A stretch of 64,000 nt of DNA from Macrostomum lignano (GCA_002269645.1 NIVC01002691.1:28555-92554), one strand, 5' to 3'; shown: positions 4,775 through 56,750, counted from the first letter of the stretch. The notes: generated from the sequence alone by a model not told the origin. Made by a program: numbers and translations.

Positions 4775-7883
<3,109 letters not shown>

Positions 7884-19000: not shown

Positions 19001-20006
19001 TTGCCAGCACCAGAGACAGCAGGCAGCTCTGGTCGGCCAGCAGGCCAGTGCGGAGCTGAGCTCGCTGCTCAGCAGCCGGGTTCGAGCCGTAGCCCAGAGT
19101 GACCATGGACCACAGGCCGGATGCCAGACTATTATACAGGCCGGCTGATCCACCAGCATTGACCAGCATTCTATCGGGAGCTGGCGGCCGCTGCACATAG
19201 TATTTCAACAGCACCTCCATCAGGCGGAAGGCGTGCATAGAGCAGCGGCCGGTGTACAGGATCTGGTAGAAGGTCAGCTTCTCAGCCGGCTCAGTTCGGT
19301 ACATCTGAACGCTGAGCAGCACTAGCAGGCTGCACACGCTTTCGTACACAACAGGAAATGTTGACTCGCGAACCGGGAGCACCACTAGCAAGTGTACAAG
19401 AGCTTCTATCAGCTCTTCAACCATGGTGGCGTCCGCCTCGGATGAGGAATTCGATTCGTCGCTTCCGTCGCTTTCGTCACCGCTGTTGTCGGCCTCTTCA
19501 AGGTCGCGCTTGCTGGTGGCAGCTGAGGCGTCGCCCTGACTCTGGCGCTGCTGATTGAGCAGCCTTCGCTGATGCAGCTGCTTGTCTGGACAGTGCTCAA
19601 TCTGACTCAGCAGCAACTCATCGCTCAATTGCTCAACCAGGTGTTTAATTATGCAACGCGAGATGAACAGAGCATTGTAGAGCTGCATCAGGAAAATGTC
19701 ACTTTGACGCCCATCAGCCAGTGGTTCGAGTACAAACTGTTGCAGATTGGAAACCATGGTAACTAATACTCTGAGCAGGCTATTGAGATTGCCAGATGAG
19801 ACATTATTAACAGTGAAAGTGGTTAGAAGGTTGGCCGTTTGTTCCTCGAGCAGTTTAGCATCTGTACTGGTGACTGGCGGTACAAAAGCATAGCTAAGCA
19901 GCTGGTTCCAATAGGGATCATTGCTGGAGATGGGCTGCTTGCCGCACAGTCGGATTAAGTACTCATTTGAGGACAGCTCTGCCAGTGAGCTACTGTTGGC
20001 ACCCAT
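16013..20006 (-). CDS. DYM: Dymeclin, ~737 aa, join(complement 18663..20006, 16013..16882)
   Basis: N-terminus MGANSSSLAELSSNEYLIRLCGKQPISSNDPYWNQLLSY (MG myristoylation-type start) and motifs SSHQ|VYMALIVLLMLTE, RDKYLHTNCLAALANMS and PKYKYVEEESPDEFFIPYIW match dymeclin as recalled. Phase-0 intron CAG|GTGAG (18662) to GACAG|GTG (16883). Confidence 0.95.
16975..18440. repeat. 35-bp minisatellite filling the dymeclin intron (GTGTCCGTGTTGTCTTGTCTTTGTGCCTGTTCTTA)
   Basis: Direct tandem periodicity, about 40 units. Confidence 0.95.
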
Positions 20007-25759: not shown

Positions 25760-28700
25760 TTAGCTATTCATGACTTCATATATTTTAGCTACACCAGTGA
25801 GCTCTTTTCTGACTCTTTTTTCATTTGTAGCATATCCTAACTTGTGTACTTGCTTGTCATTTAAGAGGTACTGACAGAAGTATTTTTTTCTGATCTTTTC
25901 AGTTTGTGGACATTCGGTCAAGTAGTGTAGGATATCGGAACCATTTCTCGCTCCACACAGTCTGCATGCTTCATGAGAGAAAATGTTGGGTGTAATTTCG
26001 CATTTCAGTTTTAGGAGGGTTGTTAAGAATTTTTTGTTTCTAAAAGTGCATGGAAAGTAATCTGAAAGGTCGGGCCTGCAGATTTTTTTGTAGAGATAGG
26101 CGTTTTTGTAGAGTTTAATATGTTGCTGATTCTCTGGCTTTTGGCTAAGTTCTCTTTCTCTGTGTATCTTGAGGTGCTTTTTCACTAGGTATTTCTCGTT
26201 ATTAAAGCTTTGGGAAAGTTTATCTTCAGTTAGTGCTTTTAAGTCTATACTTTCCAGTTTCTTTAGTACATTTGTTTTCCATGGATTTTTTTGGCTGGTG
26301 TTTGAGTAGAAAATTTCTAGAGTCGTTTGGCAGAGTTTTTTGTGTCTAATCTTCAGCCAGTAGATGAGGTAGGTTTTAGCGATTCGTTGAGAGATTGGAG
26401 TAAGCTCAAGTTCTGATGATATCACACTGTTGCTAGCAAATTTTGGTAGATTGAGGAGATATTTGTAGAATTTCAGCTGAATATTATCAATAGCTTTTGT
26501 ATCAGACATGGTAGCCAGAGGGCCCCAGAGCTCACAACCGTAAGTGATAACGGGGGTAACAAGCGCGTCAAATAGTCTGCGAATGAGTGTGATGTCTAGG
26601 GACGTATTCTTTACCCTATGGAGTAGGGAAAACATGGCTGTATATCCCTGCTTAGTTTGGTGTTCAATACATTTTTTAAAGCTGTTTTTTGGTTCAAAAA
26701 TAATTCCCAGGTATTTAAATTCATTTACTTCCTCTATTTCTTGGTTGTCGTAGTATATTTTTGTAGCAATGCTTTCTGCGTCGTTTTTTTGTCTGGTATT
26801 GCCCTGCATGAACTTTGTTTTGCTTGCATTTACTTTCAAGTAATTTTGTTTGCAGTCATTTTCCATAGTCGTAAATGTGTCTTGAAGTTCGTCTTTGTTT
26901 TTAGCTAGAATGGCTTGATCGTCTGCAAAGAGTAGGATGAGTGGGAAAGCAGATCTCGTAAGAGAGCGCCTAGCGCTAGAGAGTTCAAGATATTCAACAA
27001 TGTCGTCAATATATAGTTCAAAAAGGATGGTAGAGAGAGGGTTGCCTTGAAGAACACCTTTTGATATTGGGATTGGCTGGGTTTCATCATCATCATCATC
27101 ATTTTTTAGAATGAAGCAGGCATTTTTATGCATGTTCTTGATAAGTTCCGTCATTTGACCTTTAATACCCTGGTTATCCGTTTTGTGCCAAAGGGTCGGT
27201 TGATTTAAGCTATCGAAGGCTTTTTCATAGTCAACAAATCCAATAAAGAGTTCTTCTTTGTTGTAGATGGATTGGTTTATAATGTTGTAAAGATTAAAAC
27301 ATTGGTCGATTGTGCTGTGATTGGGCTTGAAACCGTATTGGTATTTTGATATAAGATTGTTTGCGTATGCTAGGTTTTCGAGTCTGGATTTAATAATTTG
27401 GCAAAAGAGCTTGCCAAGAATTGGTTGAATGCAGATTCCTCTGTAATTGTTGGGGTCGGCACTGCTGCCTTTGTTTTTATAAATCGGATGAAGTGTATTT
27501 GTTATCCAACTAGTTGGGAAGGTTCCTTGTTTGAGTGCTTCGTTGAAAAGTGAGCATAGGAGGTCAGCAAGTTCGTTCTCGAGGTATTTGAGTGTTTCTA
27601 CATATACTTTATCGTGCCCAGGTGCTTTGTCGGTTTTGAGCTTTTTAATATGTTTTATAACTTCTTCTTTGGTGAATGGGGCATTGAAATCCTCTAAATC
27701 AGCCAGAATAGGGTTGTCAAGGTGAAGATTGTATGAAAGTCTAATGCTGCTGTCTTGTTCAGTTACAAGATTTTGAAAGTGTATGATAAATTTTTCATCA
27801 ATTGTTACTCTGTTGTTTGAGGGATTTGGTGTTTTTAATAAGTTCCAAAGTTGTTTTGTATCGTTTTGAATAAAGGCTTGGTTGATCATGTTGTCTGCAC
27901 AGAGAGTTGTTTCAAATTTCCATGAAGTGAGCTTTTTTTCGTATGCTTTTTTGAGTTGTACTTTGCTTGAGAGGTTGTTGGGAGTAGGGAAGGTTTTATA
28001 TCTTCTGCAGGCATGTCTAGCAGCGTTTCTTAAATCTTTAAGGAAGCTAGGCAGTGTTGAGCATAGTGGGTTCTTTATCTCTACTGTGATGTTGTTTTGA
28101 ATTTGTCTAACTTTTCTACTTAATTCATTTATAAAAGCTGGGTTTTGTATGTCTGGATTTGTGATTTTGTCATTCATGTTTTTCAGGTCATTTGCGAAGT
28201 TATTGATATGTTTTTCTTGTTGCAGGTTGGGTTTATGTGACTTTTTTAGGACTCTGTATCTCGTTTTCGAGTTATTGGTTGCTTGTTTAGTTTCTGTGAT
28301 TTCCTCTGTGAATTCACTTGATAGGGAGAGCACTATTTGGTTGTGGTCGCTAAAGTAGGTGTGATTCTTTACTTTAAAGTCTTCGAGGTGTTGGAGTAAG
28401 CTGGTAGAGACGAAACAGAGATCTATAACAGAGGAACCAGATTTTGAGAGAAAGGTGAATTCACCATTTGTGTCTGATAATGATCTACCATTGATTAGAT
28501 GCAGGTTGTATGAGTCAGTAATCTGGTTAAGTAGTCTACCATTTTTGCAGGTTTTCTTGTCTTGGCTTTGTCTAGTAAGTGAGATGTTTTTTGCTCTGGT
28601 GGTATATATTGAATTTAAATCTATGTACGAGGTATTGTATATATGAGCATTGAAGTCTCCAATAAGGAAGATGTTTTCTTCGGAGTGGTAAGCATCCAGG

Positions 28701-29362
28701 AGAATTGTTAACTGTTCCCAATTTTCTTCTTCATAATATTTTGAAGACAGTGGGGGTATATAGGCGTTTATTAAGGTAAAGCTTTTGTTTTTATCCTTTT
28801 TGTGTTTAAAATTTAGTGTCAAGAAGTTTTTATAATGTTTGAATGATTCTGTAACATTGTATTGTGTATCTAGTGACTTTTTGTAAGCTGTTAATAATCC
28901 ACCAGAAGCTCTGCCAATGAATTTACAGCCTTTTTTGTTTGCAGGCTTTTGGTATGTCATGTAGTTTTCAGACAGGTTGTTGATTTTGAGTCGCTTGTTT
29001 TCATTTTTTGTGTCTATTATCCAAGTTTCTTGAAGGCAGAGAATATTATTCTTAAAAATTGATTCAGTTTCCAGTAGTTCAAGTTTGGGAATCATCACAG
29101 AGTCTTTTATTGTGTAAAGTCCATTGATATTCCAGCTGCTAATAGTAAATTTTTCTTTATCAATTTTTTGGATAATATTAAATTCAAGGAGTTTTGATTT
29201 GATATTGTAAGGAATTTTTTTGATCTTTTGAGCATTGTTATTTCTAATAGAAATGAGGTACTCTCTAGTGTATTGTATCCGCTTTTCATTTGCCTGGATA
29301 ATATTTTGACTATTTTGACCATTAAGTGTTGGGGTATTTAAGTCACAGTTTACAGAGGAAGT
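25760..29362 (-). CDS. LINE ORF2: AP endonuclease, reverse transcriptase and C-terminal Cys/His motif (open frame of 1200 codons)
   Basis: APE motifs SSWNING, LCLQETW, IGDFNAH, SVIDL, FSDH; RT motifs KAPGHD, QYGFK, FVDYEKAFDS, GVLQGNPLS, LFADD, FKYLG; C-terminal CRLC...HYLTEC. Manual translation shows no stop between 29362 and 25763. Confidence 0.95.
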   Translation of the reverse strand, partial: TSSVNCDLNTPTLNGQNSQNIIQANEKRIQYTREYLISIRNNNAQKIKKIPYNIKSKLLEFNIIQKIDKEKFTISSWNINGLYTIKDSVMIPKLELLETESIFKNNILCLQETWIIDTKNENKRLKINNLSENYMTYQKPANKKGCKFIGRASGGLLTAYKKSLDTQYNVTESFKHYKNFLTLNFKHKKDKNKSFTLINAYIPPLSSKYYEEENWEQLTILLDAYHSEENIFLIGDFNAHIYNTSYIDLNSIYTTRAKNISLTRQSQDKKTCKNGRLLNQITDSYNLHLINGRSLSDTNGEFTFLSKSGSSVIDLCFVSTSLLQHLEDFKVKNHTYFSDHNQIVLSLSSEFTEEITETKQATNNSKTRYRVLKKSHKPNLQQEKHINNFANDLKNMNDKITNPDIQNPAFINELSRKVRQIQNNITVEIKNPLCSTLPSFLKDLRNAARHACRRYKTFPTPNNLSSKVQLKKAYEKKLTSWKFETTLCADNMINQAFIQNDTKQLWNLLKTPNPSNNRVTIDEKFIIHFQNLVTEQDSSIRLSYNLHLDNPILADLEDFNAPFTKEEVIKHIKKLKTDKAPGHDKVYVETLKYLENELADLLCSLFNEALKQGTFPTSWITNTLHPIYKNKGSSADPNNYRGICIQPILGKLFCQIIKSRLENLAYANNLISKYQYGFKPNHSTIDQCFNLYNIINQSIYNKEELFIGFVDYEKAFDSLNQPTLWHKTDNQGIKGQMTELIKNMHKNACFILKNDDDDDETQPIPISKGVLQGNPLSTILFELYIDDIVEYLELSSARRSLTRSAFPLILLFADDQAILAKNKDELQDTFTTMENDCKQNYLKVNASKTKFMQGNTRQKNDAESIATKIYYDNQEIEEVNEFKYLGIIFEPKNSFKKCIEHQTKQGYTAMFSLLHRVKNTSLDITLIRRLFDALVTPVITYGCELWGPLATMSDTKAIDNIQLKFYKYLLNLPKFASNSVISSELELTPISQRIAKTYLIYWLKIRHKKLCQTTLEIFYSNTSQKNPWKTNVLKKLESIDLKALTEDKLSQSFNNEKYLVKKHLKIHRERELSQKPENQQHIKLYKNAYLYKKICRPDLSDYFPCTFRNKKFLTTLLKLKCEITPNIFSHEACRLCGARNGSDILHYLTECPQTEKIRKKYFCQYLLNDKQVHKLGYATNEKRVRKELTGVAKIYEVMNS

Positions 29363-30034
29363 TCAGTAGGTTTTAATGAAGGGAACTCCCCTCTTATAGC
29401 CAATTCGGATGTTTTTCTCACCATTTTCTTGACGAGTCTTAAGCTCTTTAACAATCTTCTGCTTATATGCCCGTTCCTTTTCTGTTAAGTCGTTCTCGAT
29501 CCGAATACGGGAGTAGGCAGAGCCAGTTTCGCGCAGGTTTCTCAGATTACCGAAGAAGGCCGCTTTGTCGCTATCGTTGACCAGCCGAACAACGAGGGGC
29601 CTTGGTCGATTGCTGAGAGGTTGTTCGCGACCGATCCGCCTGGTGGCGACAATTGGGACAGTTGCGGGGGACACTTTGAGCCCATCCTGCATAAAGTCCT
29701 CGAGCTTAGCGTCTTCTTGGAGTCCAAAAACTATGATGTTATTCTTCTTTATACCGCGCTGCCTGACTTCCTCCACGATTTCATCAAAGCTGATGTCGTA
29801 GGTGACAGTTTGCTTCCCACTCTCAATCGACTCTAGCTCTTCTATGCGTTCTTCGAGGGCCGTCAGCTTGACTTTGAGGTCTTTAAGCAGCTCCATGCTG
29901 TTAAGTAGCGCGCGGGCATGGGTCTTGCAATCTCGGCAAGTCCATATGAGACCATTATCGCTAGGGCCATTTGCGATGGCGGTGAAAATTGGCTTTGCTA
30001 GGCCGGAGCAGGACTGGTGGCACCAGCGGTGACA
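29363..30034 (-). CDS. LINE ORF1 (partial PHD finger, coiled coil, L1-like RRM/CTD region); first ATG at 29896
   Basis: KKNNIIVFGL, RRIG, RPRPLVVRL, IENDLTEKER and IGYKRGVP are typical of CR1-group ORF1. The upstream in-frame sequence reads CHRWCHQSCSGL...IWTCRDC. Confidence 0.85.
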   Translation of the reverse strand, partial: CHRWCHQSCSGLAKPIFTAIANGPSDNGLIWTCRDCKTHARALLNSMELLKDLKVKLTALEERIEELESIESGKQTVTYDISFDEIVEEVRQRGIKKNNIIVFGLQEDAKLEDFMQDGLKVSPATVPIVATRRIGREQPLSNRPRPLVVRLVNDSDKAAFFGNLRNLRETGSAYSRIRIENDLTEKERAYKQKIVKELKTRQENGEKNIRIGYKRGVPFIKTY

Positions 30035-32304: not shown

Positions 32305-32500
32305 AGAAATCTCTCCATTTCAGCATTCGAGGTGTGCCACGAAGCTCACAGATGTTCAATTGAAAAGATATTTTTGGTGTAAGGTCTACTCAGATGTTAT
32401 ATTGCAAAAATGCTTTTAGTTTAATTTTAAAAAGATTTTCCTTGCTGTAGTATGCATTTGATTTTTTTGTACAGTCACCATCTACGTCGTAAATTCTAAA
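32305..32500. repeat. 197-bp tandem repeat, unit 1 (units 2 and partial 3 lie at 35474-35834)
   Basis: Near-identical CTCCATTTCAGCATTCGAGG...AATTCTAAA units on both sides of the Chapaev element. Confidence 0.92.
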
Positions 32501-35469
32501 CACGCCTATGCAGAAGCTGAAAAATGGGGAAAGAAAATTCCCTAAGAAACTAATGCTTTTCCCAGCCCCAAGGACCTATGCAGATTTCAAAAACAGTGTC
32601 AGACAAATCTAATCGCCTTGTCAAAAATGGTAATATGAATTTTTATATTATATGCAAATTACATGTAAGATGATAGATATTTAAGGCGAAACCCATCGAT
32701 AATATTAATGTTAATATAAGTTCGTAGTTTTAATATTATTTTTAATCATTAAAGGAACGTGCAAATGTATTAGTATTAATATTATAAAATGAGAACCATG
32801 CACTTATTATTGCTAATGTCCGTATGGAATAAAGTGCGCATGGATATTAAGTACACAAGCTAAATCCTAGAAATCTTGGCAGGCATGAAAATGCTTGACA
32901 TCAAATATGGCTGGAATTGTAGCTAACAACTGCGCGCAGCAGGCATTCTGCATACTGCAAATGCCCCAGAGGCCTGCAAAACCGCTGCCACGTCGAACGA
33001 AAGTCGCTGTGTGCAGACTCGACTGCCTGCTCACTGAAGGTCCCAAGGCCTGAGTTGAATCGCTCGCAGAACTCCGGAACATGGTGGAAAAGGGCGTGCA
33101 TCTTAGGTGTCGGCACCAGCTTCAGTTCAGCGCAGCAGGATTCCAGCTGGGCAATCTTCTGGCAAAAGTCGCTCATCAGCTGTTGCCCAAAGCATGCTTG
33201 GCGAACAGCATCGAATGCCATGAGAGCAGACGCATAGCCCTGGAGCCTTGATGGCAGGTTGCTCTTGAGCTCTTGAGCTTTAAGCAGCAATCTGACACAC
33301 GCAGGGCCTTCCAGACACCCGCCGTGGTACTGCTCGCGACAGATTCCAGCTGAATGCGCCCACTTGTATGCCTTGTCGTCGCCTCAAGCTGAGTTCAGCT
33401 GATCGAGCAGTTTGTTGGTCACACCAAGCATGATGTGCAGCTCTGGTGGTGGCACGAGGTCCAGCATTGGCGTAGAATCAGCCCCAGGGAGAAGAGGCTG
33501 TCTGACACAGCTTGCGTAGTTTCTTGCCAGTCGCTGGCAGCTACCAGCAGCCTCGAATGCCGTGGCCATCCGACGAATGGATCCAAGGGTTCTTATGGAA
33601 CCGGCAACTTGCCACGGCGCCTGCCCCTCACAGTAGAGACAAGGATGAGCTGCGGCATGACTTTGAAGGCCACACAGGATGTTGGCTAGCTTGAAGTCGC
33701 AAGCGACTGTGAACTTAATCGATGTCAAGTCTAGCTCATCTAGAAGTGCTCGCACATTTGCATAGTTCTCCTGGACATCCTCAGCAATCGCGATGATAAA
33801 CAGTTTTTTTACGCCAAAGTTGCTTATTCGCGACTCCCTGCTCAGCTTCTTAGGTGTGGACTCTGCCTGTGGTTCGGTAGGCAGTACTGGGGCGACACTA
33901 AGGCAGATTTTTAGCGAGCCACCACCTCCGTCCATCCCCAGCTTCAATCTCACATCGAACTCACTAAATCCTCGCTTTGAGCAAATGAAGCTCAGCAGTC
34001 CCTGCAGATCGGGGCATATGACGGAACATCTTGTGGTATCAGTAAAGCTGCCACCTGAGGACTTTTGAGTGAATTTGAGCTGCCGCATCTCAAAAAAACT
34101 CTCCGCGATGCTGCCTGCGGCTGCCAGAGCTGCCCGCAGTCCGGGTTGCACGGCCTTACGACTGCCCTCCGCCTGCCTGATAATTGTGGCTGCCATGTTT
34201 GTCTGCCGGTCACTCAGATTGAGAGATGTCTTTAACGTTACTAGTGTCTCGGTCCTCAGCGCTCTCTGCTCATTTGAATCACTTGCATGCCTCAGCTGCA
34301 TTGGTGGGCCACCGGTGGCGCTGGAAATAGAAGCCGTTGATCCATGTCCTGATGCTGCTGCTGCTCTTAGCTTTTCACGCATCACGTCATGAGCGATGTG
34401 CTCTTTTGATGTAGGGCTGAGCGTGCGCAGGTACTGCAACTTGCTGGAGACGCTGCACTCGTGCCTTAGGCCTTTGCCCACAAGTGAGTGGCACCTAGTG
34501 CAGCGCTTCTCCGAGTCTCTGTCCTGGCTTCGAGTTGTTTCTGCAGGTCGTCCTTGGGGCAATTTATGGTTGGCCCGGCTGCTGTCAGACATGTATGGGT
34601 GCCAGACCGCCACCCGCTTGTTTGATGGGCTGGAAACTACCTGGCAGATACAGCAGGAGCAGTGCGGATGCTCACGTGTGAGTTGTGGCAAAACCTCCAA
34701 ATCTGCAACAATTTGAAGGTATGGCAGTCGAGCAGGCAGTTCTTGCGGTACAGGTGACGTCTGTGACTGCAATTTCTTGATGCAGCAGCTGCACATGCCT
34801 CCTGGCAGAGTATTACGGATGTAGGCATGACAGAATTCTGACAGGATAAATTGCTCGATGAGTTCTGCCTGAGCAGCTGAAATAACGCGATCGGCTTTGC
34901 GGAAGCAGAGGATGCAGCACCAGATACGATTCTCTTCATGTGTGCGTCGAAAGTTTGGCATCGCGAGGCCAGAGAACTGATTTGAGTACTGAGGGTAATT
35001 GTTTCAATTGACTGCAACTTTATTTTCAAAGGAAGTCTGCGTGTTAGCAAACTTGTGATAAGAGGCATGTTCTACTTTATGAATGTACATAGTCTGTTCA
35101 TTGTTTCTCAATCCCTTAATCACAATAGATCTCAATAAATATGTACATTTGAGTTGTCTGCCAAAATTTCTATCTAATAATGTACAGCATTATATAACGC
35201 CCTTAAATTTATGCTCTAAACTTTGCAATTGATGCCTGCTCTTGTTACGCAATTGTTTTCAGTACTTGCAATGGCGCAACTGACGAATCTAATACTGAAC
35301 ATGCAGCTGAGAACACATAATTTCAATTTTCCATTCTATTATTTTTGGACAAGGCGATTAGATTTGTCTGACACTGTTTTTGGAATCTGCATGGGTCCTT
35401 GGGGCTGGGAAAAGCATTAGTTTCTTAGGGAATTTTCTTTCCCCATTTTTCAGCTTCTGCATAGGCGTG
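32501..35469 (-). mobile_element. Full-length Chapaev-type DNA transposon (2969 bp), ~122-bp TIRs starting CACG, 4-bp TSD TAAA
   Basis: TIRs 32501-32622 and 35348-35469, first 76 bp identical; TAAA at 32497-32500 and 35470-35473; transposase ORF inside. Confidence 0.9.
32901..34961 (-). pseudogene. Chapaev/Transib-RAG1-like DDE transposase, 686 codons with one in-frame TGA at 33384-33386
   Basis: N-terminal H-x7-C-x2-C-x33-P-x3-C-x2-C zinc finger; GMDGG (D1), ACDFKL...HPCLYC (D2), PPELHIMLG, YHGG, PKMHALFHHVPEF, FSEQAVESAH (E). The two ORF-track pieces are in one frame, linked by ...LNSA*GDDKAYKW... Confidence 0.88.
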
Positions 35470-35473
35470 TAAA

Positions 35474-35834
35474 GAAAATTCACTCCATTTCAGCATTCGA
35501 GGTGTGCCACGAAGCTCACAGATGTTCAATTGAAAAGATATTTTTAGTGTAAGGTCTACTCAGATGTTATATTGCAAAAATGCTTTTAGTTTAATTTTAA
35601 AAAGATTTTCCTTGCTGTAGTATGCATTTGATTTTTTTGTACAGTCACCATCTACGTCGTAAATTCTAAAGAAAATTCTCTCCATTTCAGCATTCGAGGT
35701 GTGCCACGAAGCTCACAGATGTTCAATTGAAAAGATATTTTTAGTGTAAGGTCTACTCAGATGTTATATTCCAAAAATGCTTTTAGTTTAATTTTAAAAA
35801 GATTTTCCTCGCTGTAGTATGCATTTGATTTTTT
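35474..35834. repeat. 197-bp tandem repeat, units 2 and partial 3
   Basis: 35474-35670 repeats at 35671-35834 and matches 32305-32500. Confidence 0.92.
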
Positions 35835-36415: not shown

Positions 36416-39400
36416 CATAGTTGCCACCCCTGCTCAAATTTTGAGCAATTGCTCAAAAAAATTTAAGCTGCTCAAATGCTCAATTTTATTTGGTTCTGCT
36501 CAAAAAAGTAATTATTTTTTTGCTTGTCTATTTTTTACTTCTATTGCTAAAAAGTCATTCTAAATAAAGTAAGAAAGGTCAAAATGATTCTTGTTCCTTC
36601 TTTTTGGGTCATTAGTTTTGTAATTTTCTCTATAAACTTATACGTATAAGTCTATGTATAAGTATATTATATGTATAAGTAGTGAAAGTACTAAAGTGGG
36701 AATCTAGGGAAGTAGTAGTTTAGGTACTACGCTCGTATAAAATTCAAGTCACATTTCAGCCACATTCTAATGCCCACTGATCGAAAAACGAAGTGGAATG
36801 CTACCTGGTTATCTGAACATGACCATTCTGGGGTCAAAATATCACGATGGTGCCAGAAAGACGACGACAATGACGATGAAGCCACATGTAGATTGTGCAA
36901 CCGTGGAGTAAATTTTCGTCAACATGGCATTGCTGCTTTGCGACAACATGCTGATGGTGCAAAGCACAAGGCTCTTTCTCGGGCTATGGTTGCTGCTTAC
37001 AGTCAGCAAAAAATCAATGCTTTTTTCCCAATCACTCCATCTGAGAACCAACAACTAAAAAAAGTGGAGGCAGAGGCATCTTTGCCCCAACAGACCATGG
37101 CGGCGAGCCTACGATTCGGACTGCTTGTTGTTCGGAAAGACCTATCATTCAAAACTATGGACGAAATTTCTGAAACACTGCCTGTTGCTATTCCTGATAG
37201 CAGTGTTGCTCAGAACTTTTCATGTGGAAGAACCAAGACAACGTACCTGGTCACTGATGCACTTGCCCCACATGCTAAGGAGGAAATGTTTAAGAGCCTT
37301 CGTGACTCTCCCTTTTCAATTCTGCTTGATGAGGGCACGAAACGTGACCGCTGCTGGCTGGTTTTACTGGCCCGCACTTTCTGCATTGAAAGGCAGAAGG
37401 TAATTCTTGTCTACATTGGTTCAGAGGAGCTTAAAAATTCATCGGCGTCAAATATGAAGGACACAGTTTTGTCGTTGCTATCCCAAGCCAAATTGCCTGC
37501 AAGGAATGTTATTTCCGTGATGACAGATTCCTGCAATGCAATGAGAGGTATGCGAGATAGCTTGATGAGTAATCCTTGTTGACAAAGATCCTGTCCCTAA
37601 AATAATTCACCTTTCACATTTCAGGCATCCACAATGGACTTCTCACCAAGCTGAAAGATGCTATGCCGCAGCTTATTGATGTTGGAGGCTGCAGTCTCCA
37701 TCATGTACATAATAGTGTTCAATATGCAACTAAGGCATTTGACAGCACTGGCGAGGCTGAAGGACTGATGGATGATGTCTATAACTATTTCCGATTTGTG
37801 AAAAGGCGCGGAGCATTCCATGAGGTATGAATTTAAACTTTGCTTAATCTTGAATGTGCTTTTCTTCCCTGACAAAAATTAAAATTTTTAGATTCAGGAT
37901 GCACTGGACCTGGCTGAACACGTGTTCATCCGCCGAGTCGAAACTCGCTGGCTCCAGATTCTAAACGTCATTCGACGGATTCTAGAGCAATGGGAGGCCC
38001 TGAAGCTGCACTTTGAGAAAGCTAGTGCCTCAGAACTGGACAACATTCGGGCACGACGAATCAAGCTGGCCCTTACTGATGAGATGCTAGCCAAGCTCCA
38101 GTTCTTAAGCCAAGTGCTGCCAAGATGCGAAGCATTCGAGAAAATTTTTCAGCGGGAGAGCACTCAGGTTCACCACTTGGCTTCTTCGCTGGAAAAGCTT
38201 TTTAGTGACATTCTTCTTTGCTTCATGCGGAGTGAAGTTGTTGAAAACAGCCGCTCTCTTTCAGACCTGGTTGACAGGGCTACTGATCGCAACAATCAAC
38301 TAATGAACAAAGATCTAATCATCGGCTCGGCCACCCGTGAGACTGTTGCACGGTTACGTCAGATGGAGCAGATTGGCTTTTTTAAGTCAGTTCGCTGCTT
38401 CTTTTCTGAAATTATTAGTCGACTGTTTGCCTACTTACCTTTCAACAACAAGGTGCTTTCTGGCCTTCAGTTTGTGGATCCTGAATACATGTTGGGATCA
38501 GACTTCAACTTTGACAACAGCATTCTACGTGTTGGGCGTGCTATGAGCACAGTCATTTCTGCCGACTTGCTGGATGATATCCGGCTGGAAGCTACAAGGC
38601 TTCGACTGACCTGCCCAACTGAGAAAGCAAAGGAGACACCAGAGGCTTTTTGGGCACAGCTTTCTGTTGAAGATTATCCTCATCTTTCTAAACTAGGTCG
38701 TGCTGCCTGCTGCATACCGCACGGTAATGCAGATAGTGAACGAGTTTTGAAATGGGTGGCCAACAACTTGACCAAGCAGCGCAATAGGCTAGGAGAAGTT
38801 ACGCTGGACTCGATTTTGGCTGTGAAAGTTTGGATGAAATGCAACAGCACTGGCCCAGCCAAGGTCACTATTGATTCTAACCTGCTGGACACAGCTTTTC
38901 AAGCCAAAAGCAAAGCCGATGAGCGACGACGAGCTAAGCAAAACGAAAAGGCCATGAAGCGACTTCAGCAAGCACTGGAGGAGCAGCGACGACTGGTTAC
39001 TGAAAAGGAGAAAGAGCTCCAGCAGCAGAAGCAACAAAAGCAGGCAGAGGCCCAAACAAAGATTGACGAAATGCGCAAGAAGGCTCAGGACATGCTCGCA
39101 CTTGCTGATAAGGAGGAGCATGCCCTACGCAAGCGGCATGGTGACAGTGAAGAAGCAAAATCAAAGAAGAAGAAGAAATGACTATGTTTGTACATTTTAT
39201 CAGCTTAAAATTTACTGAATGTTTGTAGTAACTATAACTCTAAGCTTCATGCTGTAGTCTTTATTGTCTGAGGTGCTTCTTTTTATTTTTGTCTGCGCAA
39301 CTTGAAACAATTTTCCTTGTACATGTAAACCATTTTTGTTTTCGAATTTACTAAATGTCTGTCATAGTGAAAAGAAAAACTGGTTTGTGGGAAGGATGCG

Positions 39401-39467
39401 AGTTTTTGACCTGCGCTAAAAATTAGTCCTTGCGCTACTTTTCTTCAAAAACTGGGTGGCAACTATG
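36416..39467 (+). mobile_element. Apparently intact hAT DNA transposon (3052 bp), 14-bp TIRs CATAGTTGCCACCC, 8-bp TSD GCTCTTAC
   Basis: TIRs at 36416-36429 and 39454-39467; identical TSD at 36408-36415 and 39468-39475. Confidence 0.95.
36770..39181 (+). CDS. hAT transposase, ~755 aa, join(36770..37547, 37625..37824, 37892..39181)
   Basis: BED-like CRLC...QH...KH, LLDEG, TDSCNAMRG, GGCSLHH, ETRWL, C-terminal IPHGNADSER...QRNRL. Two short GT-AG introns restore one frame; an alternative acceptor at 37897 is also in frame. Confidence 0.9.
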
Positions 39468-40879
39468 GCTCTTACTCTCATAATTAAAATCTGCTCTGCT
39501 CCCTCATTTATATTTCTAATCTGCCTCGGGACTCTGTTTATAAGCCCTAGGCCCTAATATAAGCGTTTTAGGCTAGGCCTAGTATTAAATTATTAATATC
39601 AATGATCGATTAGGCCTATGCTATGTTCTCTTAAAATGGTTAATTATATGCTTTTATTAGGCCTAGTAAGTAATATTTATTATATATAGGCCTAATTGGT
39701 AGCATAAATATTTTATTATTCTTGCTTGGTTATATATTGTATATAAATTTGCTAGTAGCATATATTATATTTAGCCTAATATAAATAATAAGTAGTATTA
39801 AGCCTATAGACAATAGGGTGCCAGTCATTTCCTCTGCTGACAGTTCATCTGCTAAGTAGACAAAAAGTTTTCTATTTCTAAAACTGTTTATCTACCAAGA
39901 AAGAGGAGTGGGGTAGGGAGTTGCCTAACCCACAACCTCTTCATTAACATTGTTAAACTGCTACAGGGATGGTTGGTCTCTTCAAAATGAATCTCTTCAA
40001 AATATGTTATCTATGCTGACTATTGAGCCATTGAGGTGGAAGGCCTTTTTGTTTCAATAGATAGAATGGCAGCAAAGATTTTGCACTGCATTGTGCATAT
40101 ATTTATACAAGTGAAAACAGCGCGAGATTATTGAGGGGCCAAGGAAGGTGCGCACATGTGGCATGGCATGATTGGCTATGCCAACCCCCCTTGGCTTAGC
40201 AAGCCGGCTAGCACGGTGCGCCACCATCCCACCTCAGCTAGACAGAGGTTAGTGGGAGGTTTCCAGTGCGGCTGCACTGGTGCTGCCAGTCGCATAGTCT
40301 GGCCGCCACACTATGCATTATATATAGTGCCTACTAGAGATTTTTTCAATTTTTAAATGTATGCCCTAGATACGGCTATAGTAGGGGCCTATAGAGCAAA
40401 TTCAAGTTTACTAAGGAGAAAAGTTGTTTAGAGAGTGGGACAATGGTATGTGACAGCTATAGATGATTTGAAAGCAAGTAAAAATTGTTTTTTTTCATAT
40501 TAGGATCATTTATCTACAAAGTGTATTGCGCGATTATTTTTTAGATTAAATTTAGTTTGTTTTATTTGCAATATTTTGCTATAACAAATATACCTTGAAT
40601 TATAAATTGAACAAGCTGTTGAAACCCCGGATTTTGAACCTAGACAATTCCAATCCCCAGAATTTTTTTGCATATATTCTGAAATCTGAGGCCATACTCA
40701 AACAAGACTTGTTAATAGTTATAGTAGGATAGAGGTAAACATAAAATCTAGTACATTTGTGTAAAATTAGGATTTGAGCAAAACATTTGATTTTGTAAGC
40801 TGGGGTGCTACGGAGAATGTCAGGCAGTGTCTGTATTTTGGCAAACTCTGGCCTCTGCCTCTGACTGACCCTATATCCC

Positions 40880-41270: not shown

Positions 41271-41859
41271 AGACTTAGACAAGATACAGCTACAACTTGC
41301 CTACCAGCACTTTTCAATGTTTGCAATTGATGGGCTTGAAGAACCCCCGAGGTAGCCTGCTGAGCTAGCAGATCTGCCAAGGCATATAGATTTAGGTTGC
41401 CATTTCTTGCTTTCTTGTTGAGGGCCATGTGCTATCCTTTGATGATTGTTAGTATGCTCTCTCTTGCAGTAGACTAAAAGCTCTTCGTGACTCCAAATGC
41501 TACTATAGAGCCACATTGTGTCTAAGTAGCAGCAGAGTGCTACCAGTGCTTCAGATCAGTTTGCCTCTTTAGCGAGAGTGCTAAACACCACGTAGATATG
41601 TTTGGCAAGAAGGTGGATTAGCATTATCAACTTTCGGCAAAAGAGTCTTCTGCCTCTGTCTGCTGCTCAAGTATATATTGCAAAACTTCTATGTAATCAT
41701 ACTTTGATTTTCCCGACATTAGTGCAAAGAAGAGAGGCACTTGTTTTTGCTTTCTATCCTTCTGAAGAAGTCCATGAACTGAAACGAGAAAAAAAGCTAG
41801 ATGATAAATAATTACCACATTTTGTGAGTGAATGGGGGTGATAGTAAATTAACCTGATT

Positions 41860-42706
41860 GAGTGGTTGACTGGGTAAAAGTGAATTAAGTGGGTGAGTGG
41901 CTGGCTGAAAGTGAATTAAGTGGGTGAGTGACTGGGTGAAAGTAAATTAAGTGGGTAAGTGGCTGGGTGAAAGTGAATTAAGTGGGTGAGTTGCTGGGTG
42001 AAAGTGAATTAAGTGGGTGAGTGGCTAGGTGAAAGTGAATTAAGTGGGGTGAGTGGTTGGGTGAAAGTGAATTAAGTGGGTGAGTGGCTAGGTGAAAGTG
42101 AATTAAGTGGGTGAGTGGTTGGGTGAAAGTGAATTAAGTGGGTAAGTGGCTGGGTGAAAGTGAATTAAGTGGGTGAGTTGCTGGGTGAAAGTGAATTAAG
42201 TGGGTGAGTGGCTAGGTGAAAGTGAATTAAGTGGGTGAGTGGCTGGCTGAAAGTGAATTAAGTGGGTGAGTGGCTGGGTAAAAGTGAATTAAGTGGGTGA
42301 ATGACTAGGTGAAAGTGAATTAAGTGGGTGAGTGACTGGGTGAAAGTTAATTAAGTCAGTGAGTGGCTGGGTGAAAGTGAATTAAGTGGGTGAGTGACTG
42401 GGTGAAAGTAAATTAAGTGGGTGAGTGGCTGGGTGAAAGTGAATTGAGTGGGTGAGTGGCTAGGTGAAAGTTAATTAAGTGGGTGAGTGGCTGGGTGAAA
42501 GTGAATTAAGTGGGTGAGTGGCTGGGTGAAAGTGAATTAAGTGAGTGAGTGACTGGGTGAAAGTAAATTAAGTGGGTGAGTGGCTGGGTGAAAGTGAATT
42601 AAGTGGGTGAATGACTGGGTGAAAGTAAATTAAATGGGTGAGTGGCTGGGTGAAAGTGAATTAAGTGGGTGAGTGGCTAGGTGAAAGTTAATTAAGTGGG
42701 TGAGTG
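41860..42706. repeat. 31-bp minisatellite (GGGTGAAAGTGAATTAAGTGGGTGAGTGGCT), ~27 copies, inside the MULE
   Basis: Direct tandem periodicity. Confidence 0.95.
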
Positions 42707-44051
42707 TGATCAATGTGTGGATGATGTATGGAGTGTGGATGATAATGTGATCAATTTTACCTTGCTTACCTTTTCCTATTTATAGCGGGAGCAAATTAAT
42801 CCAGTTAAATAAAGCATTGTCTTCTAGAATCTGACAATACTCCTTTTGGCTTATGCCTGAACCACATATTCGGTGCTGCCATTGACTGCAATCATCACAA
42901 TGCAAAGCTTGCTGTTGAGTGCTCACACACTTTCTACAAATGACACATGTCTTGCATCCGAGAAATTTTGAATGAGAATAACTATTTGCCAATATTTTTA
43001 TTGTTATCAAATTTTTAACAATTTCTGTTCCACTAGTTTTAGTTAAGCTTTCTTATTTTAGGTGTATATTGTAAAATAGTTTGTTATAATGATGAAAGAC
43101 CCATATATATGCAGATGCAGCACTTTATAACTATGTTAATGGACAGAGTTGTCCAGACAGAGGCAGCTCATTAGTCCCCTAGCTCCCTAGTCCCCATCCC
43201 ACTCCTCATCCCCACCCCATTTCCCAGCAGACAAACAGTTTTAGAAGGAAAAGGGCATTTTGTCTACTCAGCAGACGAACTGTTGGCAGACAAATGAACT
43301 AGAAACCTAGAGGATAGTAGGCCTATTGTTTCATCTTATTCTTAGACTATATCTATCTAAGCATTTTGGTTACTTTTATAAAGAATTTCTCTAAATTTAG
43401 CCTAGGCACTAAGATAAGATCAAAGAGAAAATTATGGCTCTTAGGCATTATAGGACCCCTATACTGCTCAAAGTGATTCTGCTTAGACTATTTTTAGATG
43501 TTTCTCATTCTATAAACAATCATCAATTCTCCTAGATCTAGTGCTTAGGGCAGGCCTAGGGTTTTTTATATTTTAGGCCTATCAAAATTAACCATGTCTT
43601 AAAATTCTACTTGGAACAATGGTTTTCTTACTAAACTATGGTTTAAAGATCTTGCAAAGACCAAGCTTTTCAAGTTCCTAAAAGAATATAAAAAGAGCAT
43701 TGTGGCAATCTTTTCTTTGTGCATTTTATATATTTTTTCTTTATTTTTTATAGTTTTTGTTAATGGATAAATACTAAAAATAATAGATTCATAGAATGAT
43801 TAATAATTTTCAGTAGATAGATTGTCAATTGTCAACTAGTGAAACTATTAATCAATTAGTAGTCCTACATATAGATCTTAAGCAACAATAATCAATAATT
43901 ATAGTTGTAAATACCAATAAGCCAGTCATGGTTTTGGTAATATACTGCAATACAGTGTTAGGCACCATTACTAAAAATCTTAACTTCTATTAATGTCAAA
44001 AGCATTAACATTAAAACAAAAAATGTTAGCTTATCAAATCTTAGTTTCATT

Positions 44052-44595: not shown

Positions 44596-45856
44596 TTAGT
44601 TTCATTTAGTTAACTGAAAGTTAACTAATAATAATTAATAAACAATAGTCTATTATAGTTAACATAGAAAATATAGAAATCTTGCACTTTTTATAAAACA
44701 GATTTCATAATGCACTGTATTTGCTTTTCTATATTTTTAGCAAAACACAAAAAGTCATTCAAGCAATTTACAAGCTAAAAAATACTAATTGTAAAAACTT
44801 GTATACATCTAAATAGGCCTATACTAAATCTAAATATACTAAATCTCTAATATTTGTATGTCCATAATGCTCTAGAGATTGCAATTCTTCACCGATTTTG
44901 ATCGTGTTTTCGCCAAAAGATTCAAAATAATACTACTAAAAGTAAGCATACAATAAAGAAGTACCTTATTTATTTTAAATTGAAAGCTAATTAGTTAATA
45001 ATAAGATATTAATATGAAGGTTGTTTTAGTAGCATTAGCAGGTGAAGCAGAAAGTTACAAAAAATTAGGAAAGAAGTGAATCAAAGCAATAAATGGATGC
45101 TCACAATTGAGCAGTGTGAGCAATAAACTTCACAATTTTAATTAATTATTAAAGTTTATTAATAAAATGTTGTTACATTTGCACGATCATCATCATAAAC
45201 AAAAAGATTAATCAGGCACTTAGGTAAATTCAGATACATTCATAATGTTGTAACTTCTTTTTAAAATCTTTTTCTTTGTCTTTGGTCATTGACATTGTCA
45301 TTAATGTTAACAATAAATTTGTTCTTAACTTACAAAATTATTAATAAAATTTTGTTAATCTATTAGTGTAAAAAATCTTAATGGTAGTCTGTTAATTCTA
45401 ATAAAATTATTAACACTTATTAAGGCTTATTAAAGGATTAACACTTATTAATAGACTGGTGCCCAACACTGCTGCAACAATTAAGTTGCATGACTGCTTG
45501 AGTTATGAGTCTGCTGTATCTGTCTATCTTCTACTCAACTAATAGTTAGACTCTGTGCTATAGATAAATCAATTAGCTACATCATTGTACTCATATTTGA
45601 ACTGCAAATTTAAAAGAAATCTTTAATTGTGCAAAAGTAAACAATCAAAAATTTGCACCCAGGATGCCAGATGACATTGTGATTCTGATTGCTTTTTAAC
45701 CCAGTTACAAACCTATTGATTAAAAGTACATCAGCTCATTGAAATCTTGCATTGTCTGTAAGATAAGTATTGATATACTTGTTTACACTATATTAATGCT
45801 AAACATTTCAGAGAATATTAAAATCTGCTGAGTAACATTAATCAAGCTGCAAAATA

Positions 45857-48800
45857 ATGGCAATGTTACACCACTTGCTGTTTTCACTTTTGGCTGGCGC
45901 TGCTCTGATGCAGCTGGTGCTGGCGAATCCACTTGACTCGGCAAGCCTGCCTGCTGGCTGTCCACCAGCTGGCTCGCAGCCCACCATTATGCCTGGCACA
46001 CTGCCAAACAGCACCGCCTATCTTGACTATGTCCTAGCCGAGACAGGTCAACGAGTGCAGTTTTATTACAATCAAAGTCTCGGCTTGGCCGCTCAGCTAG
46101 TTAGAAATTCAGCTAGCGACACTGCCGGCCCTGATGAATACCAGCTTTATGACCATGCTCACGGTCAAGATGTGAGCCATATGCTCAACTGGCCAACTGG
46201 CCGGTGCAATGTCAGCAATGCTACTGGCCTGAGTGACTCGCTGGCCGAAATTCGCAATACTGTCTTTTTGAATAGTAGCGCCTCCCCCTGTCTGCTGCTG
46301 CTGCTGGCTCCTGAACTGGCTGACGCTCATAACCACAGCGGCAAAGGTGGGCAGCCGCTGAGCACTCTGGCCTGGGAGAACAACACCGCCTGTTTCAATG
46401 GGACCAAAGCGCATGATGGCCAAGTCTGGCGAGTCAAAATTCAGCTTTTCGGAGATGCTAAGGTGAAGCTTTTGTGTTAAATATTCATTTTGCTTGGTGT
46501 TAAAAAGGGCCGTTTTACATCAACTGGATGTTTTTAAAAAGGCGGTTTAACCCGCATCGAATATATGTTTTCAAAAAAGGCCGTTTTATTCGCTATCGAA
46601 TAGGTGTTCTAAAAGGGCCGTTTTACAGATACTAAGTAAATCTTTTGCGTTATATAATCATTTTGCTTGGTGTTTTAAAAAGGGCCGTTTTACCACCATT
46701 AAATAGGTGTTTAAAAAAACCGTTTTACATCTACTGAATGTTTTTTAATAGGTGTTCTCAAAAGGGCCGTTTTGTTCTTATCAAATAGAAGTTCTAAAAA
46801 GACGATTTTACCGTATTGACTAGTGGGTGTTCTAAAAGGGCTGTTTTGGCCTATCAAATAGGTGTTCTGAAAAGGGCCGTTTAAATCGCTAACAGTTTCA
46901 GGTGTTTAAATTTCCAAGAGTGACCTAGGTGATTTTTGCACTCACCCCACAGGCCGATGTGTCGAGCGTTACCTTCGAACTGCTCTCGCCACCAACAAAG
47001 GAGAATGCCACGTCGTGGACTGTGTCGGAGCGTCGCACCTATCGATTCTTGGCCAGCCAGCGTGGCGCGCCTCCGCCAGGCGCGATTTCAGCTCTGGCCA
47101 ACCCGCCATCGTTTGTAGCCTGCGGCGCCGCCCGCGAACGGGACAGCCGGCCACCAGCTGTGCCAAATTCCATGCTTAAGAATCTTCGCCTAGCAACCAC
47201 CGATAAAAGTTCTGCTTTAGTTGTCGAGGATTGCGCCGCCAGCGCACTCGAATTGGCGCCTCAGATTGGCGCCAGGCTGCGCCAATTCTATGGCCCGAAC
47301 CGCTTGAGACTGGTTGCCGACCGAGCTCTGGCTGGGGTTGAATTTGTGCAAGATTTGGAGGCCGGAAATTGCAGTTTGGATTGGGTGGACAAGTCCGCAC
47401 TTGGGGGGCCGCTGCCATTCAATTTGAGCGCTGACGGCTGGCTGTGGACTGGGGAAAGCGCCGAGTTTCAGGTGATTTTGTTATTAATGTGCGCACGGCT
47501 GTTCAGTCCAAGGACTGGGGAGGAGGGGGGTCGCCACACACACCCTCAATTACCCCAGCTAATGCTGGCACCCATTTTACACCTGGGGTAAACTGAAGCA
47601 ATGTAGAGTATCTTAAGTGTCTTGCTCAAGGACACAAATTGTTCCGAGTGGTCGAGAATCGAACCCCCGACCTTCCAGTCGTGAGTCCGACCCTCTAACC
47701 ACTAGGCTAGAACCCGTTCTAACCTAACCTAAGGTATTAGATTAAATAAATTTAATCTTTCAACTGCTACTATTGCAAACTTTTCCTCTGTGTATTTTCA
47801 ACTATTGAATTTGTCTTTGGTTATTCATCCGAAATTGAAGATATTCTAACAAATAAATCAACAGGGTCGCCAAGGCTGCCGCCGTTACCTGCGATTGGCT
47901 GCGAATTCCCTAATAGACTACGAAGTGTACTTTTGCGGCGGCACAAACTTTACCAATCTGGTAGGCTACAGTCGGCGGCGTCGTCATGGCAGCAACCACT
48001 CGGCGGTTGAAGTGGCCAACTATCTGGTGACAGAGATTGATAGCGCCACCGAGCGGCCCATTGAATACGACTTGACCGCCTGCGCTTTGCTGCCTGGCGG
48101 AGGCGGCGCCAAACGGCTGTTGATGCGGGTTTTGGCCGCCTATCATGTGGTGTGTGTCACTTCCGGTTTATGAGGCTTAAATAGTGTGTCACTTCCGGTT
48201 TATGAGGCTGCATTAGTGTGTCACTTCCGGTTTATGAGGCTGCATTAGTGTGTCACTTCCGGTTTATGAGGCTGCATTAGTGTGTCATTTCCGGTTTATG
48301 AGGCTTTTTTAGTGTGTCACTTCCGGTTTATGAGGCTTTTTTAGTGCGTCACCCGGTTTATGAGACTGCATTAGTGTGTCACTTCCGGTTTATGAGGCTG
48401 CATTAGTGTGTCACTTCCGGTTTATGAGGCTGCATTAGTGTGTCACCCGGTTTATGAGGCTGCATTAATGTGTCACCCGGTTTATGAGGCTGCATTAGTG
48501 TGTCACCCGGTTTATGAGGTTGCATTAGTGTGTCACTTCCGGTTTATGAGGCTGCATTAGTGTGTCACCCGGTTTATGAGGCTGCATTAGTGTGTCACCC
48601 GGTTTATGAGGCTGCATTAGTGTGTCACCCGGTTTATGAGGCTGCATTAGTGTGTCACCCGGTTTATGAGGCTGCATTAGTGTGTCACCCGGTTTATGAG
48701 GCTGCATTAGTGTGTCACCCGGTTTATGAGGCTGCATTAGTGTGTCACCCGGTTTATGAGTCTATTATTTTGTGACTTCCGGTTTATGAGGCTTAATTAG

Positions 48801-49597
48801 TGTCACTTCCGGTTTATGAGTCTTTATTAGTGTCACTTCCGGTTTATCAGTCTATTATTTTGTCACTTCCGGTTTTTGAGGTTTAATTAGTGTCACTTCC
48901 AGTTTATGAGTCTTTATTAGTGCCATTTCCGTTTTATGAGGCTTTATTAGTGTCACTTCCAGTTTATGAGTCTTTATTATTTTGTCACTTCCGGTTATGA
49001 GGCCTAATTAGTGTCACTTCCGGTTTGACTATTAGTGTTACTTCCAGTTCATAAGACTAATTAGTGTCACTTCCGGTAAAACTGTCTTTCCTCTCACTGC
49101 AGGTCGCCAACAGCAAACCTGCCGATTTAACCGCTTTGGTTCGTTCTACCGTTACCAAGGCAACCGGGATCTCTCCCCTACGCTTAGCTCAGATATCCGT
49201 TGCTAAGGACGTCAACGCCAGCCTTAGCCAGGTGTGGCTGACCCTGCTGGGGCCGCCTACAAACGCTAGCAGTTCCGCCGGCGCCGCCAAGCCTTTGACG
49301 CTCGATGCCAGCTTGAAGAAACTGCTGCTTGCCGCCTCTGCCAGTGGATTGGATTTCAAGGTCGGCGACTGGCCCGTTGCCAGCCTGGAGCTGGGCAGCA
49401 ACGCTACCGACACTGCTGGTCGCGGTGGCGGAGGCGGCGGCGGCGGCAGCACGGTGTACATTCACGACGGTCACTCTGGCGGAGCCATGGCTGCCCTGGC
49501 CTTCTTCATGCTGCTGCTTGGCGGCGGTGGCGGCGTCCTTGGCGCCTGGTGCGTCTGGAAGCGGCGGCCAAACATGCCGTACTATGTGCAGGATTGA
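45857..49597 (+). CDS. Type-I membrane glycoprotein with ependymin/LolA-like motifs, ~634 aa, join(45857..46462, 46953..47471, 47865..48149, 49103..49597), copy 1
   Basis: Signal peptide MAMLHHLLFSLLAGAALMQLVLA; many N-x-S/T sequons; three phase-0 GT-AG introns giving one frame; TM AMAALAFFMLLLGGGGGVLGAWCVW; tail KRRPNMPYYVQD. The fold assignment is inference. Confidence 0.8.
46500..46885. repeat. Degenerate repeats of an AAAAGGGCCGTTTT motif in intron 1 (also at 53316-53701)
   Basis: About ten imperfect motif copies at irregular ~35-60-bp spacing. Confidence 0.75.
47480..47709 (-). mobile_element. tRNA-derived SINE in intron 2, copy 1
   Basis: A box TAGCCTAGTGG, B box GGTTCGATTC, core GTGTCCTTGAGCAAGACACTT and GTGTAAAATGGGTGCC; an independent homolog lies at 62014-62158. 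Confidence 0.85.
48150..49075. repeat. 30/32-bp minisatellite filling intron 3 (TGTGTCACTTCCGGTTTATGAGGCTGCATTAG), copy 1
   Basis: Direct periodicity starting at the donor and degenerating toward the acceptor. Confidence 0.93.
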
Positions 49598-49999
49598 TGT
49601 ACTATGTGCAGGATTGATGTACTATGTGCAGGATTGATGTACTATGTGCAGGATTGATGTACTATGTGCAGGATTGATGTACTATGTGCAGGATTGATGT
49701 ACTATGTGCAGGATTGATGTACTATGTGCAGGATTGATGTACTATGTGCAGGATTGATGTACTATGTGCAGGATTGATGTACTATGTGCAGGATTGATGT
49801 ACTATGTGCAGGATTGATGTACTATGTGCAGGATTGATGTACTATGTGCAGGATTGATGTACTATGTGCAGGATTGATGTACTATGTGCAGGATTGATGT
49901 ACTATGTGCAGGATTGATGTACTATGTGCAGGATTGATGTACTATGTGCAGGATTGATGTACTATGTGCAGGATTGATGTACTATGTGCAGGATTGATG
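49580..49999 (+). repeat. Perfect 20-bp VNTR (TACTATGTGCAGGATTGATG) x21 containing the gene's last five codons and stop
   Basis: The first unit encodes YYVQD*; 420 bp equals 21 units. Confidence 0.95.
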
Positions 50000-56635: not shown

Positions 56636-56750
56636 TCAGCGGGGCAGGGATTGACTGACTCGGTGATGTAGAGAATAATCTGGTGGGGAAGTTGCGTTTT
56701 AGTCTCTCAGTGAGTTTTGGGATTCCAGTGGGTTTATTTTTTATAAAGAT

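Follow-up and report, generated by a model that had tools for sequence, protein, structure and literature searches.

Overall structure of the element and its insertion site

A 64,000-nucleotide stretch of the genome of the flatworm Macrostomum lignano (GCA_002269645.1 NIVC01002691.1:28555-92554), referred to here as the window and numbered from its first nucleotide, contains a 2,969-bp element at positions 32501–35469 that is very probably a Chapaev DNA transposon of the autonomous type, located within a 197-bp tandem repeat and carrying one nonsense mutation. The element is enclosed by two terminal inverted repeats (TIRs) of 127 bp each, which match at 125 of 127 positions with two mismatches. 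The left TIR (32501–32627, plus strand) starts with CACGCC, its terminus reading CACGCCT, and is located on the 3' side relative to the transposase gene. The right TIR (35343–35469, minus strand) ends with GGCGTG, so that the tips of the element form a CAC...GTG pair. An earlier reading of this stretch (the original prediction) had described CAC-starting TIRs of approximately 122 bp; the CAC start stands, and the length is revised to 127 bp. An exact match to the first 29 bases of the end is present at both ends, in opposite orientations, and nowhere else in the window, compared with zero occurrences expected in shuffled sequences. Each end also contains two copies of the motif CCTATGCAGA, spaced 70 bp apart, at 32505–32514 and 32575–32584 in the left end (element positions 5–14 and 75–84) and at 35386–35395 and 35456–35465 in the right end, where the inner copy carries one mismatch. 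The TIRs are separated from the transposase gene by A+T-rich regions on both sides. The downstream region (32628–32900, minus strand) is untranslated, and the upstream region (34962–35342, minus strand) presumably provides the promoter and 5' untranslated region. The G+C content is 0.32 over element positions 1–400 versus 0.54 in the coding part.

The element is flanked by a perfect 4-bp target-site duplication, TAAA, at 32497–32500 on the left and 35470–35473 on the right. The insertion target is a tandem repeat with a 197-bp unit, 2.8 units and 98% identity, whose two parts (32314–32500 and 35470–35834) are located on either side of the element. When the element and one TAAA copy were excised by script and the flanks were joined, an unbroken 2.8-unit array of the 197-bp repeat was restored with a 98% match, and the rebuilt junction differed from the natural unit junction by one base. 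The natural junction to the next unit, with TAAA at 35667–35670 and no insertion, is a paralogous empty site. Because the next repeat unit provides this empty site, the element boundaries and the 4-bp duplication are fixed exactly, and the 4-bp duplication claimed in the original prediction is confirmed. The structure is that of a cut-and-paste transposon with a 4-bp staggered insertion. Three copies of CGTGGAACTGAA come after the 197-bp tandem repeat.

Transposase reading frame and its single stop codon

The transposase is encoded on the minus strand by a frame of 686 codons that runs from an ATG (34959–34961, read from 34961 downward) to a natural TGA stop (32901–32903). No further open reading frame (ORF) of at least 150 residues was found inside the 2,969-bp element. 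As originally described, the frame is interrupted only by a single TGA at 33384–33386 (codon 526), and no frameshift or indel is observed over the 2,058 coding bases. A search of 5.8 billion proteins identified seven homologs with 30–51% sequence identity, and a second, word-indexed homolog search using the alignment returned nothing further. The homologs contain 660–710 residues and are colinear with the window protein from the N-terminal MPxxxRTHEE motif to the C-terminal YNSxHI motif. The alignment is gap-free at the stop, and the misalignment of the linker between the two ORF pieces that had been feared was not seen. Of the six homologs that extend over the stop column, three have tryptophan there, the two closest among them, and tryptophan is also the most frequent residue at this column in a 79-sequence family alignment (23 of 78 members). 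The TGA at codon 526 differs from TGG by one transition, consistent with the TGG-to-TGA change that the original prediction had considered plausible. At 84 strongly conserved columns, the window protein deviates from the consensus four times, and the family median is six. Because the homologs align across the stop and departures at conserved columns are few, the protein looks as sound as its relatives apart from the stop. As judged from the reading frame, this copy cannot make an active enzyme, since its 525-residue product ends before residues H622, H627 and E648 of the core. The element copy could still be moved in trans by an intact sibling.

A lone stop in a well-preserved frame with only 4 of 84 conserved columns deviating, located at a tryptophan column and one transition away from TGG, would also be expected if the TGA were not a real lesion but stemmed from faulty sequencing or assembly or were confined to one allele; the copy in the animal would then be intact and autonomous. 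A 99.98% identical tandem duplication elsewhere in the window hints at imperfect assembly of this repeat-rich region. However, the sequence contains no sign of error at this position, and a single nonsense change is the usual first lesion in copies of DNA transposons; the error explanation is regarded as improbable. The long open frame is the single feature that would fit a host gene domesticated from a transposase. Domestication is contradicted by the structure of the element, namely its intact inverted ends, target duplication, paralogous empty site and premature stop, and is extremely improbable. The locus is best read as a Chapaev transposon with a probable nonsense mutation.

Domain architecture of the transposase

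The transposase is predicted from sequence and structure modelling to consist of an N-terminal Chapa domain, a small C2HC zinc knuckle and a RAG1/Transib-like core of the RNase-H fold with a predicted catalytic triad. The N-terminal domain (34644–34940, minus strand) resembles the N-terminal zinc-binding domain (NZD) of RAG1 and was recognized by a profile match to the Chapa domains of Repbase. Its eight zinc ligands are residues H8, C16, C19, C57, C60, C101, C103 and C106. The ligand pattern fits that of type I, in which the second zinc is coordinated by one N-terminal and three C-terminal ligands. The C2HC knuckle (34455–34502, minus strand) was identified by alignment conservation and adopts the pattern C154-x2-C157-x9-H167-x-C169. 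Its four ligands are nearly invariant in the 79 sequences and invariant in alignment A3. For this second finger, the CxxC half had been described correctly, but the spacing of the other half is H-x-C (H167 and C169) and not H..C.

The core is divided by the premature stop. Its N-terminal part (codons 277–525; 33387–34133, minus strand) contains D344 (33930–33932), E398, D422 (33696–33698), C441, C444, L508 and H509, and the C-terminal piece (codons 527–686 and the natural stop; 32901–33383, minus strand) contains H622, H627 and E648 (33018–33020). Residues D344, D422, E648, C444 and H509 are invariant in the 79 family members, as is E398, and the full DDE triad proposed in the original prediction is therefore retained as D344, D422 and E648. 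The C441-x2-C444, L508-H509 and H622-x4-H627 motifs are each at least 90% conserved in the same sequences. C441 and C444, together with H622 and H627, are predicted to form a zinc site between the second aspartate and the glutamate. In an AlphaFold2 model built from an eight-sequence alignment, residues 277–686 are confidently modeled, with block predicted local distance difference test (pLDDT) values mostly of 80–95, and the N-terminus of the full-length model is poor. The first 175 residues modeled alone gave a confident structure, with a pLDDT of ∼90 over residues 10–90. In the model of the core, D344 is located at the end of a strand, D422 immediately follows a strand and E648 resides in a helix, a placement that would be expected for an RNase-H fold.

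Comparison with RAG1, RAG1L and HzTransib

The relationship of the core to proteins of solved structure was analyzed by sequence profiles and fold comparison. A Pfam scan of the protein identified no family at E ≤ 10. Single-sequence and eight-sequence-profile searches of PDB sequences gave only chance-level matches, and RAG1 was thus reached only with a deeper profile. A profile of the 79 family members matched just four PDB sequences at E ≤ 10, three of RAG1 and one of amphioxus RAG1L, with zebrafish RAG1 as the best match (3jbw_A, E = 9.4e-5) and RAG1L at E = 8.2e-4 (6b40_A). In the profile alignment, D422 is aligned to the aspartate of the RAG1 YDEK motif, C441 and C444 to CTLC, L508-H509 to LHC, H622 and H627 to HKTLAH, and E648 to the glutamate of NES. 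We take the RAG1 counterparts to be D708, the zinc ligands C727, C730, H937 and H942, and E962. A Foldseek search of the PDB with the model yielded 19 matches at E ≤ 0.001, all of which are RAG1 or HzTransib, the transposase from Helicoverpa zea; the next match has an E value of 0.04. RAG1 is the best fold match (9jpu_A, E = 2.4e-11), and HzTransib is matched by 6pqx_A (E = 6.1e-8), 6pqr_A (E = 2.2e-6) and 6pqn_A (E = 5.6e-6). The original description of a Chapaev element with a RAG1/Transib-like transposase is in line with these comparisons, which reached RAG1, RAG1L and HzTransib only.

The transposase resembles RAG1 and the RAG1L protein of ProtoRAG in that these provide the best fold match and the only profile matches, and in that the catalytic aspartate and glutamate and the four zinc ligands align. 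The relationship extends to the two-zinc domain at the N-terminus, for which sea-star RAG1L scores 27 bits. In contrast to RAG1 and ProtoRAG, the element has neither a RAG2-like partner gene nor a RING finger, and it generates a duplication of 4 bp instead of 5 bp. In addition, no nonamer-binding region was recognized in the element's protein, and the sequence identity to RAG1 is only ∼12–16%. A RAG/ProtoRAG transposon is ruled out by the single long frame and by the lack of a RAG2-like gene in the 2,969 bp. With HzTransib and Transib, the element shares the core fold, the DDE triad, the Cys2/His2 zinc site between the second aspartate and the glutamate, and ends that start with CA. Transib elements differ in their 5-bp duplications and their CACAATG-like ends, which resemble recombination signals, and they lack the Chapa/NZD domain; their sequences are too dissimilar for the family profile to reach them.

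Probable placement of the element in Chapaev

Chapaev elements are recognized by duplications of 3–4 bp, by termini that are always CAC/GTG and by a transposase with DDE, C(2)C, LH and H(4)H motifs (PMC4079192), of which C(2)C and H(3-4)H are common to the group (PMC12730594). The Chapa zinc domain is shared by Chapaev, RAG1 and RAG1L and is absent from Transib (PMC4411706; bioRxiv 10.64898/2026.01.24.700457). Chapaev is assigned to the CMC group by some authors and to the Transib superfamily in a broad sense by Kapitonov and Koonin. All of these hallmarks are found in the element, which has CAC/GTG tips, a 4-bp duplication and a Chapa domain and whose core carries the DDE triad together with C(2)C, LH and H(4)H.

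To place the N-terminal domain, a hidden Markov model of family residues 1–175 was scored against Chapa domains typed from Additional file 5 of PMC4411706, a machine-read reference text that holds some errors. The highest score was obtained for Chapaev-2_HM (80 bits), in agreement with the Chapa-type N-terminal zinc finger of the original prediction, followed by Chapaev-1_AA (55 bits), Chapaev-5_HM (47 bits) and Chapaev-1_HM (46 bits). Sea-star and sea-urchin RAG1L scored 27 and 18 bits, respectively, and the RING-bearing Chapaevs, the Aplysia Chapaev, Chapaev3 (at most 11 bits) and human RAG1 scored below 15 bits. On the basis of these Chapa-domain profile scores, the element appears to belong with the RING-less Chapaev subgroup of Hydra and Aedes. 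The members of this subgroup, Chapaev-1, -2 and -5_HM from Hydra and Chapaev-1_AA from Aedes (Kapitonov and Jurka 2007; Kapitonov and Koonin 2015), share with the element the CAC...GTG tips, the 4-bp duplication and the lack of a RING finger. They also share an H-x7-C-x2-C ... C-x2-C ... C-x-C-x2-C ligand pattern, a short cysteine-containing segment after the Chapa domain, and a core in which the DDE residues are accompanied by C(2)C, LH and H(4)H; the direct sequence comparison with the Repbase Chapaevs covered the N-terminal domains. The element differs from them in its macrostomid flatworm host, and its protein is at most ∼51% identical to any sequence reached. The flatworm Chapaev entry in Additional file 5 of PMC4411706 is Chapaev3-1_SM from Schmidtea, and no published account of a Macrostomum Chapaev turned up in a literature search.

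Other groups with comparable termini were also considered. Chapaev3 (for example Garfield, Merrow and Conan; Zhang et al. 2014, PMC4079192) belongs to the same wider group and likewise has CAC/GTG at its tips and C(2)C, LH and H(4)H in its transposase. Unlike the element, with its 4-bp TAAA, Chapaev3 has 3-bp TWA duplications between A and T; membership in Chapaev3 is excluded by this difference and by N-terminal scores of at most 11 bits. EnSpm/CACTA is ruled out by termini that read CACGC and not CACTA, a duplication of 4 bp and not 3 bp, and the lack of a Pfam match at the threshold used above. The fold matches to RAG1 and HzTransib would also suit Transib proper or a lineage of its own, as yet unnamed, within the CMC/Transib group. 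Relatives of Transib can have 2–3-bp duplications and variable ends (preprint 10.64898/2026.08.26.747230), and the Chapaev placement is drawn from the N-terminal domain, the ends, the duplication and the motifs. Nevertheless, the element combines an HzTransib-like core fold with a duplication that is 4 bp and not 5 bp long and with a CACGCCT tip that has only CAC in common with the CACAATG-like heptamer. Its N-terminal domain scores 46–80 bits against the Chapa domains of Chapaev-1, -2 and -5_HM and Chapaev-1_AA, and Transib transposases have been reported to lack a Chapa-like domain (PMC4411706; bioRxiv 10.64898/2026.01.24.700457). An identity as Transib proper or as a separate lineage is very unlikely, and Chapaev is the preferred assignment.

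Abundance of the family and structure of related elements

The family was explored with the eight-sequence profile, which identified 8,971 proteins at E ≤ 0.001 and 1,353 at E ≤ 1e-30 among 1.84 billion cluster representatives, where the figure of 8,971 counts clusters at 50% identity in public data. Many of the family proteins contain 650–710 residues, match end to end and have open frames. The family is thus large and widespread, and the original characterization as rarely described applies to the literature, in which it is little studied, but not to sequence data, in which it is not rare.

A scan of metagenome contigs revealed 22 loci encoding relatives. Family members commonly have long inverted repeats (54 to more than 260 bp), and most of the contigs end inside such repeats. 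Two contigs (both JAAUXU...) contain complete but degraded elements, whose frames are broken in several places. One, L014 (2349–5309), spans 2,961 bp, starts with CACAGGT... and has a 4-bp flank of TTAT. The other, L020 (2479–4370), starts with CACTGAG... and has a 4-bp flank of TGGT. A CTGAAAA(A)TGG-like tip motif is common to these two elements and the window element, and this motif and the CCTATGCAGA repeats may be binding sites for the transposase. The contig of the closest full-length homolog (45% identical) is cut inside the left inverted repeat, and no duplication was readable; another contig (L002) contained no CAC...GTG pair with a duplication. An exact scan of the metagenome contigs for the 29-base tip produced no match, and exact look-ups of the 525-residue product and of an ORF of the neighboring hAT element matched no contig.

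Proposed mechanism and history of the copy

By analogy with RAG1 and HzTransib, the transposase would bind the long inverted ends and nick the DNA at the boundary between CAC and the flank. The element would then be released through a hairpin on the flanking DNA, and the freed 3'-OH ends would join the target with a 4-bp stagger to generate the TAAA duplication. The element would have inserted into the 197-bp tandem repeat in this manner and later gained, or have been copied with, its one nonsense mutation.

Several points weigh against the assignment of the element to Chapaev and the mechanism proposed for it. The placement draws on four features, namely the N-terminal domain, both termini, the length of the duplication and the sequence motifs, and not on a core phylogeny. 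In the PDB, HzTransib was reached by fold comparison only and not by the sequence profile. The model of the N-terminal domain has no solved homolog in the PDB copy searched, from which the nuclear magnetic resonance entry of the RAG1 NZD is evidently missing; the RAG1 NZD has been reported as a fold without solved homologs, and the result for the model agrees with this report. The hairpin mechanism is an analogy only, and we know of no biochemical study of a Chapaev transposase.

The original description as a very young copy that one substitution could revive is plausible but overstated. The Chapaev lineage may be active, or have been active very recently, in Macrostomum lignano, with intact siblings that encode tryptophan at codon 526, but this is a tentative proposal and rather doubtful. 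It is likewise conceivable, although on the unlikely side, that the copy is not especially young and represents an inactive relic whose frame was preserved by chance and that has no intact sibling left in the genome. How similar the two ends are does not date a cut-and-paste element, two of the 127 positions are already mismatched between the ends, and L014 and L020, the relatives whose termini could be recovered, are degraded. Moreover, neither the exact 525-residue product nor a close copy is on record in protein collections, where the best match is 45–51% identical. The lack of entries in protein databases is probably explained by repeat masking when the host was annotated, and not by a lack of copies in the genome. 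The perfect target duplication, a rebuilt junction only one base away from the natural unit junction, the lack of frameshifts and indels in 2,058 coding bases and the few departures at conserved columns also speak against a relic.

To our knowledge, Chapaev transposases are the only ones that combine a RAG1-like core with the RAG1 N-terminal zinc domain. With both ends, the insertion site and a full-length frame with one lesion, the window element offers a ready substrate-and-enzyme pair for biochemistry. Transgenesis exists in Macrostomum lignano (PMC8717057). If the lineage is active, the element would be the first experimentally tractable Chapaev, in a flatworm model with stable transgenesis, and would provide a way to test the role of a zinc domain of the RAG1 N-terminus type in a still-mobile transposase. 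Because the family is abundant and many members have open frames, this copy is convenient and not unique. The element leaves the knowledge of RAG evolution unchanged. It adds one clean new case to a family already known and widespread, is of modest interest and offers a starting point for Chapaev biochemistry.

Genomic setting

The surroundings of the element are rich in transposons: a non-LTR (long terminal repeat) retrotransposon is located on the left side, and on the right a complete hAT element follows after 950 bp. The non-LTR retrotransposon (25760–29896, minus strand) contains an open ORF of 1,112 residues, in which endonuclease and reverse-transcriptase domains are present, and an upstream ORF of 177 residues; the retrotransposon is A+T-rich relative to the host genes. 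The hAT element (36416–39468) is 3,053 bp long, ends in inverted repeats of 14 bp (CATAGTTGCCACCC) and is flanked by a perfect duplication of 8 bp (GCTCTTAC). Its transposase is split into two ORFs (36770–37582 and 37922–39181), the second of which matches the hAT dimerization domain.

Further to the right, the segments 44685–49820 and 51501–56636 are tandem duplicates of each other, repeated at a period of 6,816 bp and 99.98% identical over 5.1 kb. The duplication contains three identical ORF pairs without a Pfam match and several minisatellites, and it could be real or an assembly artefact. Two host genes are located on the left side of the window, both on the minus strand. The dymeclin gene (16013–20006) has two long exons, and the exon at 18627–20006 is 99% identical to a Macrostomum lignano protein, with the next best match at 39%, in agreement with this flatworm as the host. 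In the beta-tubulin gene (4775–7853), an intron is filled by a 20-bp minisatellite (∼5616–7200), which gives rise to spurious long ORFs in both orientations. Minisatellites are unusually abundant across the window, with repeat periods of 12–42 bp and arrays of 0.5–1.7 kb, and arrays are found at 3500–4400, 10000–12300, 12800–13700, 16800–18500, 41700–42800 and 59000–61200.

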